A stretch of DNA of 63,129 bases, filler included, from Hyphochytrium catenoides (taxonomy: Eukaryota > Protista > Hyphochytriomycota): assembly GCA_900088475.1 (NCBI GenBank). It is 16 parts of 16 records of this genome, joined end to end, with 100 filler letters (N's around TTAATTAATTAA, not from the genome) between each part and the next. Parts side by side here need not be neighbours in the genome. Positions count along the whole stretch, not along the records: positions 54,179 to 60,875 come from FLMG01001210.1; 15 more parts are not named here. The stretch is one strand, 5' to 3'. Numbering within the stretch: the first letter of the stretch is position 1; the number at the start of each line of letters is the position of its first letter. Below the pieces are notes generated by a model that saw only the letters and a list, made by a program, of their open reading frames with translations, made no database searches and was not told the DNA's origin. Shown piece by piece: positions 54,179-60,050 of this stretch. The translations under genes were made by a program, and so were the position numbers.

Positions 54179-54373
54179 TTGTCCAAGTCTAAGAGCTCCA
54201 GCTGCAAATTGGAGAGAGAGAGAGAGAAAGAGAGGTTATAGAGAGAAGAGGGAGAAAGAAAAGTGTCAAGGGGTACCAAGAGTGGATAACGGAAAAGTCA
54301 ACAAAGGCGATCCGGTGGAATATGAAGCAAGTGAGGGACGTGCGATGAGAGAGAGACAGAAACAGACAGAGAA

Positions 54374-54413
<40 letters not shown>

Positions 54414-54852
54414 AGAGATAAGGCATTAAAACCTGCTGAACCAGCCGCTTGGCCTCCTCCTCAGTCACTTTGCCAGCATCCACCCACTAGAGGAAGAAAG
54501 GATAAGCATCATATCAGCAGCATGAGGGCTGGAGAACGAGGGACAGAATAGAAGAGGAGAAGGAATCCAGGCCTAAAGGAGAGAGACATAGCTTTGGACC
54601 CGCAACGAACAGTCGAAGGAGAGAGAGAGAGTGACGCAGAATCATGAGTAGATGACACGGCAAGGGAGAGAGAGGTTCACTGTATGAAGGAAAAATCTAA
54701 GAGAAAGAAAGAGAGAGAAAAGATAGAGAGATATAGCGCTTCTGTAGGAGAAAAGAGACACGCAAAGTCTCCACAACCTTGAAGACGTGACCTTGTCCCG
54801 CTGCTTCATAGCGGGCGCGCAGCTCAGCGGGAATCAAAGTTGTACTAGCCAT
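54179..54852 (-). CDS. UAP1: UDP-N-acetylglucosamine pyrophosphorylase, N-terminus (copy A), cut by contig end
   Basis: Exons 54852-54778, 54486-54433 and 54201-54179 give MASTTLIPAELRARYEAAGQGHVFK|WVDAGKVTEEEAKRLVQQ|LELLDLD, the typical UAP N-terminal helix with GQxHVF. Not in the ORF track as such. Confidence 0.75.
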
Positions 54853-54930
54853 GTTTCTCACTGGAGAGAAACATTAGTCAGTCCACTCTCATATTCTCTC
54901 TCTCTCTCTCTCTCTCTGTCTCTGTCTCTG

Positions 54931-54961
<31 letters not shown>

Positions 54962-55334
54962 GTGTCTCTCTCTCTTCGAGTTGCCTCTAGCGTCTATATC
55001 ACCATCTGTCTGCTCTTCTCCAGCTGTTCCTGCTCTGTCTCCCTCTTCCCTGATGAATCTTCCTCCCAGAGCCATTTCTCATATATCCTGAGGCCCATAA
55101 AGAAACAGCAGCCAACTAACCTGTCTCGTTATGGTCAATTGCAAGGCGATGGACTCTTGGCACTCGCTGATCCTGAGACTTTATGTCTGCGCCACAGTTT
55201 CTCGCAACGGAGATGTGAAGATAGGAATCTGGTCTCTGGAAGTCGCTGGATCTGGCCACAGAGCTTTCCGTGCCCTCTCTCTTTTCCCGCTTTCTCTCTC
55301 TTCCCACTTTCTCTCTCTCTCTTCCCTCTTTCAA

Positions 55335-55407
<73 letters not shown>

Positions 55408-55924: not shown

Positions 55925-55968
55925 CTTGCTCTCTTGCTCTCTCTCTCTTTCTCTCTTTCTCTCTCTCG
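55845..55968. repeat. (CT)n microsatellite, representative of dozens of CT/GA tracts in the window
   Basis: Directly visible. Similar tracts lie at 684-720, 1247-1335, 3001-3146, 55340-55414, 61750-62000 and at many contig ends. Confidence 0.95.
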
Positions 55969-56259
55969 AAAGGAGGTGGTGCTCTTCTATTGCCCGTGGC
56001 TTCTAGGATGTCCCTGTAGCTAGCTACATTTTCTCCTCCTCTGCGTATAACAGCAGCGCGGCAGGCACAGCGCTAACTCCGTAACATTTCTTCCCATCTC
56101 CATGGAGATATAGTGAGCTCTGCTGAACCGTGCCGGTCTCTCTCTCTTTCTCTCTGCACCTACTTCGGGGACACAGAGATAGGGGAAGGGGAAGTGGCAG
56201 GGGAGACAGTTCCGCAAGAGGCACGGGGAGCAGAAGAAGAGAGGGGAGAGATTGGAGTC

Positions 56260-57792
56260 ATGGCACTGGCGGAAGATCTCAGGGCTTATCTGACCCGGGA
56301 AGGACAGGATCAACTTCTCAAGGTTCCATAATCGCCAGGCTATCTTCTCACTCTCTTCCCCTCTTGGCTCTTATGTCTCCCTCTCTCTTTTTCTCTTTTT
56401 CTTTCTCTGACTCTTCTCATCTCTCTTGCGATTTCGTTTTTATCTCTCTCNNNNNNNNNNNNNNNNNNNNNNNNNNNNNNNNNNNNNNNNNNNNNNNNNN
56501 NNNNNNNNNNNNNNNNNNNNNNNNNNNNNTCTCCTTCCCTCTCGCTCGACCTGTACGCTCACAACCTCTCTCTCCCTTCTCACAGTTCTTAGACTCCCAG
56601 GATCTGGCTGAACCACGACTTAAAGACCTGATCCAGGAGGTAAGAGACAGAGTGTAGAAAATGCTCCTCTGCTTGCAATAATTCCAGCCTTTCTCTCCTC
56701 CTTTGCGGTCGCTGTCTCTCTATCGCCTCTTCTGTTCTCCCTCTCTCTCGCCGCGTGGGGCGGTTGGAGGAGATTCTGTCGCTCTTTTCTCTCCTCTCTC
56801 CTTTCCTTGGGATCGTTGTCTGTCTCTCGACCTTTGTTCTCTTTTCGTCCTCTCTCTTCTCCCGCTCTGCCTCTTCCTCTCAATCTCTCTTTTTCTCATT
56901 TTTCTCTCTTGTTCCCTCTGTCTCCTTCTCTCTCCCTCTCTTTTTCTCTCTCTTATCTCTCTTCTTTCTCTCTCTTATCTTTTTTCTTTCTCTTCTTTTC
57001 TCTTGCCTCGTCCACCGTCTTTTTCTCTTCCTTCTGTCCCCTGTACTCCCTTTTTGGCTCTCTGGCTTACACAGTCGCACACAGTTGGCGGTCTTCTTCT
57101 ACATCCTTCTTACTCTTTCTGAACTATGAAAAAGTTATCTCGCCTTTGTATGCATTCTGACCGTTCTCCTCTCTCTCGATTTTTCACTCTCATTCTCCTT
57201 TCTTTCCCTCTCTCTCTCTTCTTTTCTCTCTCTCTTTCTCTCTCTCTCTCATTTTCTCAACCTCTGCTCTTTCTACCTTCTGTCTCTCTCTCTCTCGCTG
57301 TGGTCTCTGCCAGTTGGAAGAGCTCCATGGCAAGGGTCTCTCCTATACATCCTTACAAAAATTGTTGAGTCAGCCTGTCTCTCGTCAGTTTTCTCTTCTT
57401 CCAAGTTCTGGTCCCGTTTCTCTCTTTCTCTCTCTCTCTATAGAAGACAGGGGCCGTTGGACGGCTTTGGGTCTGGAGGCCATAGCAAAGGGAGAAATGG
57501 CCGTCGTTACGTTGGCAGCGGGTCTCTCCTCTCGGATGGTCAGTGCAAAGCTTCTGAGACGAGGATACAAAGAGAGAGAGTGTCTTCCCCCTTTTTTTCT
57601 CTCTCCCTCTCTCTCTCTCGGTATCGTTCTTTGTGTCGTTACTATAGTTTCCTCTCTGTCCGCTCGTCTGAGACGAGGATACAAAGAAGAGAGTGTCTTC
57701 CCCTTTTCCTGTCTCTCTCTCTCTCTGTATCGTTCCCTATGTCGTTACCACAATTCTCTCTCTGTCCACTCTCTCTGTTTCTGCCTCATTCC

Positions 57793-57833
<41 letters not shown>

Positions 57834-58112
57834 TCTCTTACGGCTTTTCCCCGTCTACCTCAATCTCTGCAGCGTATCCCCAGCACAGACACTGTCGGGA
57901 CAATAGACATTGGCCTTCCGTCGAGGAAGTCTCTCTTCCAGCTTTTTGCAGAGAAGATTCTTCGTCTTCAGTTCCTCTCGAAGTCGTCTCTCTCTCCACT
58001 TTCTTGGTTGATAGTTGGAAGCGCCAAGAATATTGGGACCATCACCAAGTTTTTCGAGGACCATCTCTTCTTTGGTCTCGAGCCCTCCCAGGTTGGTATC
58101 GTGCAGGAAGAG

Positions 58113-58160
<48 letters not shown>

Positions 58161-60050
58161 TGCGACAAAGAAGAGAGAGAGAGAGAGAGAGAAAGTGCGA
58201 CAAAGAAGAGAGAGAGAGGTAGAGTTGAGAAAAAAGGACAAGAAGAGAAGAAAGGGAAGAGACGTTAAGTGAAGGCATGGACGGAAAGAAAAGAGAACGG
58301 GAAGAGAGAAAGAGGTTGTGGAGCAAGAAAGCAGGAAGAGAGAAAGAGTTTAACTTATTGCAGGGGCAAGAAAGGAGAGACTGCAAAGAAGAGAAGGGAG
58401 AGAGAGAGCAAAGAAGAGTTAGAAGAGACCGGAGAAAAGAAAGACGAACGACAGAGCCAATAGAGCAGTAGAGGAGAGAAGATCGGTTTAAAAGAGTACA
58501 TGTCCCTCATCTACTCCCTCTTCTTCTCGTATCTCCTTTCTCCTCTCTCTCTCTCTGTCTCTCTCTCTCTCTCTCCCTACAGGTCCATTTTCTGGTGCAG
58601 CCTGCAGTCCCAATATTCTCAGAAAGAGGAGAGCTGCAGCTGGATTCCAACTTGAAAATAGTCCGTGCGCCACTGGGCTCTGCCATTTCTCTCCTGGCTC
58701 TAAAAGAGCTTGTAGAAAATGGAGAGAGAGAGAGAGTTCTTCCCTCTTCCATCCGGTACTTTCTCTTCTCAAACGCTAACAATGCGCTAGCAAAGTTAGG
58801 GGACCCTGCCTTTCTAGGCTGTGCAATAGAGAAGGAGATAGAGTGTCTGCTCAAGGTGACGAGAGAGAGAGGGGATGCCGGGAGCAAGCCCTTTCTAGGA
58901 ATGCAGGGGAAGAGTTTCTCCCTTCTCTCTTCGGAAGAGGCAGCAGCAGCAAGATTGAGGCAAGAGAGAGAAGAGAGCAAAGGAGAAGCGACAAAGTCAG
59001 AGGCCGATCTTTTCATAGACACTGGGAATGTCCTGATTACAAGGTAATTGGAGAGATAGGAGAGAGAGAAGGTGCTCTCCTTCTCTTTCTCTCTCCGAGA
59101 ATATTTGGCTTACATTACCTTTGCTCTTCATCTTCCTCTGTCTTTCTCAAATTTCTAAGCGTGCGATTTGTCTCTCCTGAAAGCAAAACTCTTTGTTCGT
59201 CTATCTCTTTGTCTCCCTCTTGTCTGTCTATGCTGTTACTGTTTATAACGTAGGCATTTTTCGTTATCTCTTCTATTTCTCTCTCTCTCTCTCTCTTTTT
59301 CTCTCCCTCACAATGTGCACTCTACTGTTGACCATACAGGCAACTCCTTCTCTCTCTTCTGAAGGACATCCAAGCTCTCCTTTCTTCAGCTCCTTCTGTC
59401 TCTGTAGAGCGTCAGTTCCAGGCTGTAAACCTGGAAGAGCCATCCAAGAGAAACGACGTCTCTTTCTCTCTTCGGGAGACGCCCCTTTGTTCTCTTCTTC
59501 CTGTGGATAATACGAAGCTACTGCTGGTCAAGGCAGAAGAGGTATCTAGAGAGTAGAGGAAGAAGAAGACAGAGAAAAGTTCACATGCTAGGGAGAGAGA
59601 CGATGGGAAGAGAAAGACACAGAGAGAGAAAGAAGAGAGAACTAGCGGTGCTGACGGCAAGAGACTGATAACATTGTAAGACTGCAGTAATAAGTGGAGA
59701 AGGTTTGGAGCCGGAGACAGAATGGGGAGAGAGAGAGAGAAAAAGAGAGAGAGAGAGAAAAAAACAGGGAGAGTTTTTACCTTTTTTACACTCTTTCTCC
59801 CACTCTCTAGCCCTTTTATCTTCTAACGTCACTCCTTTTGTTCCCTCTTCCCTGTCTTTTCCTTTCATTTCTCTAGGAGTTCTCTCCTGTCATCAACTCT
59901 GCGAGTGGAAGTTTGTTCGATTCTCCTCTCTCCGCCCGTGTGATGGTCAGCTCTCTCCATAAGAAATGGATCGAAGAAGCCGGAGGAGACTTCCACACTC
60001 ATCTGAGAACCGAGGGACTAATCTTCAAGAGAGGGAGAAAGCTCAGGTGA
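56260..60050 (+). CDS. Divergent UAP-like protein (copy B), 7 exons, 465 aa, catalytic motifs degenerate
   Basis: Exons 56260-56322, 56586-56639, 57314-57538, 57873-58091, 58583-59043, 59340-59541 and 59877-60050 join in frame (1398 nt). GLEAIAKG, DIGLPSRKSLFQL, FFEDHLFFGL, DPAFLG, EEFSP and LHKKWIEEAGG identify the UAP family. Confidence 0.85.

Follow-up and report, generated by a model that had tools for sequence, protein, structure and literature searches.

A putative PH-domain-bearing pseudoenzyme of the UDP-GlcNAc pyrophosphorylase family beside a canonical-looking paralogue in Hyphochytrium catenoides

The divergent gene pair

The DNA considered here (the window) is a stretch of 63,129 nucleotides (nt), filler included, made of 16 joined parts of the Hyphochytrium catenoides genome (assembly GCA_900088475.1). 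One part, the eukaryotic piece at positions 54179-60875 (FLMG01001210.1), carries two genes of the UDP-N-acetylglucosamine (UDP-GlcNAc) pyrophosphorylase (UAP) family, which belongs to the UDPGP family. They are arranged head to head, with start codons at 54852 on the minus strand (gene A) and at 56260 on the plus strand (gene B). Gene A is cut by the left edge of the piece and gene B by the right edge. Gene B appears to be a real and probably selected pseudoenzyme that adjoins a probably active paralogue.

The start codons were read directly from the piece and point outward, about 1.4 kb apart, as the first-pass annotation had described (Table 1). Since no ambiguous base (N) occurs in 54853-56259, its statement that both lie on one ungapped contig is correct for the intergenic region. 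Both genes also possess, as had been annotated and could be read directly, a phase-0 intron right after a GQxxxxK motif, a 54-nt second exon, and a third exon that begins with LE. The spacer contains many (CT)n/(GA)n tracts and a non-repetitive, more AT-rich core at approximately 55430-55800. No tRNA or Rfam family was found in 54853-56259. The region may act as a shared promoter, as its geometry (start codons 1407 nt apart) would allow.

Table 1. Features of the UAP gene pair (positions along the window)
Feature	Coordinates	Strand	Description
Gene A exon 3 start	54179-54201	-	LELLDLD, truncated by the piece edge
Gene A exon 2	54433-54486	-	54 nt, phase 0-0, WVDAGKVTEEEAKRLVQQ, AG..GT
Gene A exon 1	54778-54852	-	25 codons, MASTTLIPAELRARYEAAGQGHVFK, ends AAGQGHVFK, then donor GT
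Divergent intergenic region	54853-56259		1407 nt, 0 N
Gene B exon 1	56260-56322	+	21 codons, MALAEDLRAYLTREGQDQLLK, ends EGQDQLLK, then GT
Assembly gap (N)	56451-56529		inside gene B intron 1 (56323-56585), downstream of both start codons
Gene B exon 2	56586-56639	+	54 nt, phase 0-0, FLDSQDLAEPRLKDLIQE, AG..GT
Gene B exon 3	57314-57538	+	75 codons, starts LEEL, ends in LAAGLSSRM (canonical LAGGQGTRLG)
Gene B exon 4	57873-58091	+	73 codons; PKG lysine gone, GLPSRKSLFQLFAEKILRLQ core retained
Gene B exon 5	58583-59043	+	461 nt; LGSAI for DGNGG, NAN for VDN, SSEE for EYSE
Gene B exon 6	59340-59541	+	202 nt; KxExFxFD catalytic-lysine motif gone
Gene B exon 7	59877-60046	+	170 nt; UAP C-terminal domain: EFSPVIN...DSPLSAR...KKWIEEAGG
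PH insert start, in gene B exon 7	from 59982	+	GGDFHTHLRTEGLIFKRGRKLR
Gene B exon 8	60481-60604	+	124 nt; PH continuation MWKSRYAVFDAITNSYEYYQ, then donor GT (60604/60605)

At the N-terminus, the 50 visible residues of gene A show 56-66% identity (blastp) to canonical UAPs of stramenopile and alveolate origin, so this copy looks canonical over that length, as had been noted. An N-terminal helix pair with the pattern AGQxHLLxF is common to A and B, as in canonical UAPs, and the two N-termini are 30% identical (14/46). Judged from its first 50 residues, gene A most likely encodes an ordinary active UAP. Metagenome contigs were scanned for exact matches to the start of its exon 3, by which gene A could have been extended, and gave none.

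Gene B comprises eight visible exons with 506 codons (a coding sequence of 1518 nt), and all seven visible introns are GT-AG. Because exon 8 ends at a GT donor, gene B continues past 60875. The first-pass annotation had ended this copy at 60050, which proved too early: a further exon follows at 60481-60604, and the gene then leaves the piece at 60875. Its description of B as "intact but degenerate" is true in its second part, and the open frame was confirmed for the visible portion; "intact" is restricted to these 506 codons, since the gene runs off the piece. A 67-nt intron within exon 3 was considered and rejected, as removing it leads the frame to a stop and homologues align without it.

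Over 54179-60178, the assembly gap in intron 1 was not bridged by any contig of four public runs; the contigs are short and break at CT/GA repeats. Read depth in the bin 56379-56578 is 0 in run X1 and 4.95 in run X2. The B series GQDQLLK / FLDSQDLAEPRLKDLIQE / LEEL aligns without loss to KQDHVLK / FYQAGKLTNAEIDQLIQD / LEHL of a UAP module of Aphanomyces astaci. As exons 1 and 2 are in phase 0 and homologues align with no residues missing, the gap leaves the coding reading unaffected. A chance misjoin at the gap would not place a UAP exon 1 in order, in orientation and at intron distance before exon 2.

Catalytic motifs, reading frame and PH-domain insert of gene B

The spliced B protein aligns collinearly with the UAP modules of Aphanomyces over B residues 5-502 (blastp E about 1e-47, approximately 29% identity). 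Exon 5 alone matches solved UAP structures, namely 9g53 and 4bma (E 1.3e-6) and AGX1 (E 2e-3). On Pfam PF01704 the exons of B, scored singly, gave E 0.015 and 14.4 bits, under the cut-off of 22. Gene B is by homology a member of the UAP/UDPGP family and, given the N-terminal identity of A to canonical UAPs, the earlier claim that the two genes are UAP paralogues stands.

For the catalytic site, B was aligned with 60 canonical UAPs, in which 60 columns are invariant. B keeps 24 of these and does not retain 36 (33 substituted, 3 at alignment gaps). The signature of active UAPs, L-x2-G-x-G-T-x-(L/M)-G-x4-P-K-G together with a second lysine, is absent. Canonical LAGGQGTRLG corresponds to LAAGLSSRM in B, with loss of the G-loop glycines; PKG corresponds to TDG, where TD replaces PK and the lysine is lost; and in the KxExFxFD motif both the lysine and the aspartate are replaced, with S in place of the KxE lysine. 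The sugar and uridine contacts DGNGG, (S/V)VDN and EYSE are missing as well: LGSAI is without the asparagine, SNAN is without the aspartate, and EYSE has become SSEE. Canonical MTS is VGS. A canonical UAP motif was found in none of the six reading frames of the piece, which leaves no alternative exon where one could be hidden. Thr140, Arg141 and Lys148 of AfUAP1 are reported to be indispensable for binding the substrate and for catalysis (PMC3888555). Among their equivalents B retains the arginine only, and the threonine is replaced by serine.

The segments that build the fold are retained in B (GLPSRKSLFQLFAEKILRLQ, FFGL, LGDPAFLGCAIEK, EFSPVIN, DSPLSAR, and KKWIEEAGG). The predicted B protein is without the residues that bind uridine triphosphate (UTP) and GlcNAc-1-P and catalyse uridylyl transfer. 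The degeneracy noted at first reading is thereby borne out: essentially every catalytic motif is lost, and the frame is open.

The B coding sequence contains no in-frame stop, against a mean of 23.6 in shuffled sequences (minimum 7 in 5000 shuffles). Its other two frames contain 30 and 8 stops, and the four bases make up 25% each. Compared with a soil-metagenome relative (run X3), exons 5 and 6 are approximately 1% different, whereas the adjoining introns differ by 5-8%. Nine B exon variants were listed across runs, five of them synonymous and four conservative (L>I, S>T, I>T, I>V). The exon/intron divergence and the pattern of variants suggest that selection acts on B.

The last 63 residues of B (444-506), GGDFHTHLRTEGLIFKRGRKLRMWKSRYAVFDAITNSYEYYQ, fail to align with ordinary UAPs. 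Their match is an insert carried by the first UAP module of two A. astaci proteins (XP_009839287.1 among them), with a local score of 95 against 25 +/- 4.5 for shuffles. A profile was built from the Saprolegniales insert alone (105 positions). It matches B residues 446-495 with 28.5 bits, and 129 other UAP-family proteins gave no match. Of the 26 insert positions that are invariant, B retains 15; identity over the insert is 34-40%, compared with approximately 29% over the UAP body. An assignment of the B C-terminus to the CEISPLxSYxGEGL segment was rejected, as the alignment supports the start of a PH domain.

The PH fold, a beta sandwich of seven strands with a C-terminal helix as its cap, is shown for the Saprolegniales insert; in B the first 60 or so insert residues lie on the piece and are matched by the profile. 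The Saprolegniales insert scores 23-30 bits on the Pfam PH family (PF00169), and its language-model neighbours are PH clusters. An AlphaFold2 model of the insert from seven sequences has a pLDDT (predicted local distance difference test) of 83. It resembles the PH domains of AKT, pleckstrin (C-PH), TAPP1, GRP1 and DAPP1 (Foldseek E about 6e-6, TM 0.65-0.75). When the A. astaci module was modelled in full, confidence was high for the UAP part but not for the insert. In strands beta1-beta2 of B, KRGRKLRMWKSRY, the K...K-S-R of FKRGRKLRMWKSRY agrees with the phosphoinositide-binding signature K-Xn-(K/R)-X-R; the sequence that we take as its comparison is KRGEYIKTWRPRY of AKT1. The PH domain of B probably binds a phosphoinositide.

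The insert lies in a variable loop of the UAP C-terminal domain. This is the same loop region that holds the 17-residue alternative insert of human AGX2. The human AGX2 alignment is shifted by approximately 17 residues just before CEISPL. The AGX2 insert is reported to abolish oligomer assembly (PMC7839538, citing Peneff 2001).

Oomycete relatives, shared introns and repeats

In Saprolegniales a conserved protein of approximately 1900 residues has the order UAP(PH)-ADH_N-UAP-UAP, in which an ADH_N/MDR-like domain follows the first module. The insert is conserved across four species of Aphanomyces and in Thraustotheca, Saprolegnia and Achlya. Examples are A. astaci XP_009839287.1, Saprolegnia diclina SDRG_06484, and the proteins of Achlya hypogyna and Thraustotheca clavata. 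It is always situated between ...RW(I/V)E..GG and CEVSPLVSYEGE, in the first module of UAP(PH)-ADH_N-UAP(-UAP) proteins of 1447-1966 residues. All UAP modules of these megaproteins keep the canonical motifs. The A. astaci megaprotein (KI913162.1, 8001-13637) is encoded by a single gene with several small introns, and the junctions from UAP/PH to the ADH-like domain and from there to the next UAP are each found within one exon. Its PH domain is one exon between two phase-1 introns, the pattern expected of exon shuffling. In B the 5' border of the PH domain is free of introns, and one intron interrupts the domain. No PH insert was found in proteins of 330-1050 residues. The protein P0063 was rejected as a relative of the insert, since its PH domain is upstream of the UAP domain, a different arrangement.

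The Saprolegniales PH-UAP proteins carry no annotation beyond "UDP-N-acetylglucosamine diphosphorylase" or "hypothetical protein". In the open-access literature no publication was found that describes a UAP with a PH domain, UAP fusions in oomycetes or a pseudoenzyme of the UAP family, and the PH-inserted UAP lineage is so far undescribed there.

Fusions of UAPs are found in other oomycetes too. Phytophthora, Pythium, Peronospora and Plasmopara possess tandem UAP-UAP fusions of approximately 984 residues in which both halves are canonical. The two halves of these Peronosporales/Pythiales proteins form separate clades in the tree, with one Aphanomyces module in each. An Albugo protein was considered as a dead-plus-live fusion and rejected because its N-terminal half is not a UAP. 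A further UAP-like protein, P0005 (Logan SRR32665177, 90-1751), has degenerate catalytic motifs, with STAN for VDN, and keeps 34 of the 60 invariant columns. Its tail is coiled-coil-like and rich in lysine and glutamate, and it lacks a PH domain. P0005 may be an independent UAP pseudoenzyme.

The first-pass annotation had explained the shared introns of A and B by an old inverted duplication whose copies then diverged strongly. Age and divergence stand, given the 30% identity between the copies; an inverted duplication in place is not supported. Module M of A. astaci has the same two introns, with KQDHVLK directly before a gt donor, a 54-nt exon 2 (11875-11928) and an exon 3 starting with LEHLDLD. 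Module N is laid out alike, with an exon 2 of 57 nt. The introns are therefore ancestral to the family and do not testify to an inverted duplication at this locus. Where paralogues have introns at the same positions, these can be heirlooms of the whole family and are not necessarily marks of local duplication. Because its PH insert is homologous to that of Saprolegniales, B comes from an old, distinct PH-UAP lineage and is not simply a decayed local copy of A. This lineage was already distinct when last shared with Saprolegniales, by descent or transfer. Placement of B itself in the tree was abandoned, as its branch (about 10) is too long and its composition too deviant.

The exons on the piece have a balanced base composition, and the introns, 231-674 nt long, are built mostly of (CT)n/(GA)n-type repeats. 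In gene B introns 4, 6 and 7 (58092-58582, 59542-59876, and 60047-60480) the 5' part is (GA)n and the 3' part (CU)n. These purine and pyrimidine parts pair into a long hairpin that joins both splice sites. Minimum free energies of the hairpins are -128 and -176 kcal/mol; the z-scores are only -2.7 and -2.1 because the shuffles retain the GA/CU content. In the remaining introns of both genes the coding strand is rich in CT over the full length. Gene B intron 3 contains a tandem duplication of approximately 115 nt at 57554-57780 (tctgagacgaggatacaaaga...gtcttcccc...gtatcgtt). In the DNA runs, contig depth rises 5- to 30-fold over neighbouring sequence in several intron stretches (spikes at 57179-57378, 57579-57778, and 59579-59778), which indicates that these repeats are dispersed in the genome. 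The sequence of the piece also occurs in soil metagenomes at 1-8% divergence.

Explanations of gene B and comparison with known systems

The best explanation overall, held with guarded confidence, is that B is a non-catalytic PH-UAP that serves as a membrane-directed scaffold, sensor or partner and possibly pairs with A. B would be made as a non-catalytic protein, and its assets would be a body of UAP shape and a PH domain that probably binds phosphoinositides. Directed to a membrane, it would most likely act by binding, and it might pair with its active paralogue A and so place or tune UDP-GlcNAc synthesis. Since UAP paralogues are fused in oomycetes, there is a hint of joint function, and the idea of a regulatory subunit is plausible, with the fusions lending it indirect support. 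It is a rather speculative extension that the PH-UAP branch as a whole couples UDP-GlcNAc synthesis to phosphoinositide signals and that here a dead, lipid-directed subunit recruits or allosterically tunes the neighbouring active UAP in the manner of a prozyme, as a regulator of the hexosamine pathway.

Several points weigh against B being such a protein. A listing of public sequencing runs gave DNA or unclassified runs and none of RNA; the expression of B is predicted from DNA, and the contact between A and B and the binding of lipid are presumed. Gene A is visible for 50 residues, and its active-site region lies outside the piece, as do the C-terminal half of the B PH domain and the SPLxSYxGEGL segment. 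The list of B variants is partial and the sample small, and repeat-rich introns mutate fast. In the tree B sits on an extremely long branch of approximately 10 substitutions per site. Its composition is rich in leucine and serine (L 15%, S 11.5%), which could reflect drift under CT-repeat pressure. An exhaustive phmmer search with exon 5 against 1.84 billion representatives found no close orthologue: its five matches comprise megaproteins of Aphanomyces, two further UAP-like proteins and a hit judged spurious. The same exon found no relative of B in JGI metagenomes. The long branch, the biased composition and the failure of these searches, together with low-complexity stretches and the 36 invariant residues that are not retained, would also be expected if B were a decaying pseudogene without function. 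Such decay is improbable: the frame is free of stops where more than twenty would be expected, every visible intron has kept its GT-AG borders, fold motifs and over half of the invariant PH positions (15/26) are kept, and the exons are far less diverged than the introns, with variants mostly synonymous or conservative. That B has remained an enzyme, but acts on another substrate or by another chemistry, is very improbable. The G-loop arginine, the GLPSRKSLFQ segment and EFSPVIN are retained, but the two lysines that contact phosphate have been replaced, as have the glycine-rich loop, the asparagine that binds the sugar and the aspartate of VDN. These positions are invariant in the 60 canonical UAPs, and some are reported to be essential (PMC3888555).

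Two further explanations accept B as a non-catalytic protein and differ over its partner. B may act independently of A, as a moonlighting protein with the UAP fold comparable to UAP1L1, the adjacency of the two genes being the remnant of an old cluster. This is unlikely, yet it deserves serious consideration: A and B diverged in ancient times, Saprolegniales share the PH-UAP lineage, the shared introns are ancestral, the repeat-rich 1.4-kb spacer need not be a shared promoter, and UAP1L1 is reported to interact directly with OGT (PMC8845250). Against it, UAP paralogues have repeatedly been linked physically, as fusions in Peronosporales/Pythiales and in Saprolegniales. Alternatively, B might be the first module of a longer protein in which ADH-like and canonical UAP modules follow and the dead module acts in cis with active modules, not with gene A. 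B leaves the piece with its frame open and a donor at 60604/60605, and in every known relative with the insert the corresponding module is the N-terminal one of a UAP(PH)-ADH-UAP(-UAP) protein of 1447-1966 residues. The view ends at 60875, however, and the genes are split differently here, with A upstream on the opposite strand; a multi-module B is accordingly regarded as doubtful.

UDP-GlcNAc supply limits the synthesis of chitin, N-glycans, glycosylphosphatidylinositol (GPI) and O-GlcNAc, and the placement and regulation of the last enzyme of its synthesis in eukaryotes are poorly understood. A PH-UAP lineage that has canonical motifs in Saprolegniales and is apparently dead here would point to membrane-localised control of the UDP-GlcNAc step. 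A dead copy beside a probably live one, together with the oomycete fusions, provides a concrete case in which an enzyme of the hexosamine pathway may have a pseudoenzyme as its partner.

The closest known counterpart of B is the Saprolegniales PH-UAP module. In each, a homologous PH domain interrupts the UAP fold at one and the same site, between W(I/V)E.xGG and CEVSPLVSYEGE. Each also follows the pattern GGDF.LHL.T.G...KRG..L..W..R..F.A.TN and has the two N-terminal introns at equal positions. In Saprolegniales, however, the catalytic motifs are intact and the module is fused to an ADH-like domain and two UAP modules, whereas B has lost the motifs and its canonical partner is encoded separately, in divergent orientation. 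In A. astaci a phase 1-1 exon encodes the PH domain; B has an intron within the PH domain and none at its 5' border.

With canonical UAP1/AGX1 (1jv1, 4bma, 2yqc; PF01704) B shares a three-domain architecture, collinear over B residues 1-445, and the conserved structural segments. It differs in the absence of GGQGTRLG...PKG, DGNGG, VDN, EYSE and KxExFxFD and in the presence of the PH insert.

Mammalian UAP1L1 is not known to have clear activity alone. Unlike B, it retains the majority of the canonical motifs, is free of a PH domain, does not adjoin UAP1 and arose by a separate vertebrate duplication. The likeness is that of a UAP paralogue acting through protein binding and not simply as a pathway enzyme, as proposed for B and as the reported direct interaction of UAP1L1 with OGT suggests (PMC8845250).

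The concept proposed for B, a catalytically dead paralogue of a metabolic enzyme that would be retained under selection, is also that of the trypanosomatid prozymes. The prozymes of AdoMetDC and deoxyhypusine synthase are dead paralogues that activate the live enzyme. They belong to other enzyme families and have no added targeting domain, and for them heteromer formation and activation have been shown, whereas in H. catenoides A and B are a candidate pair.

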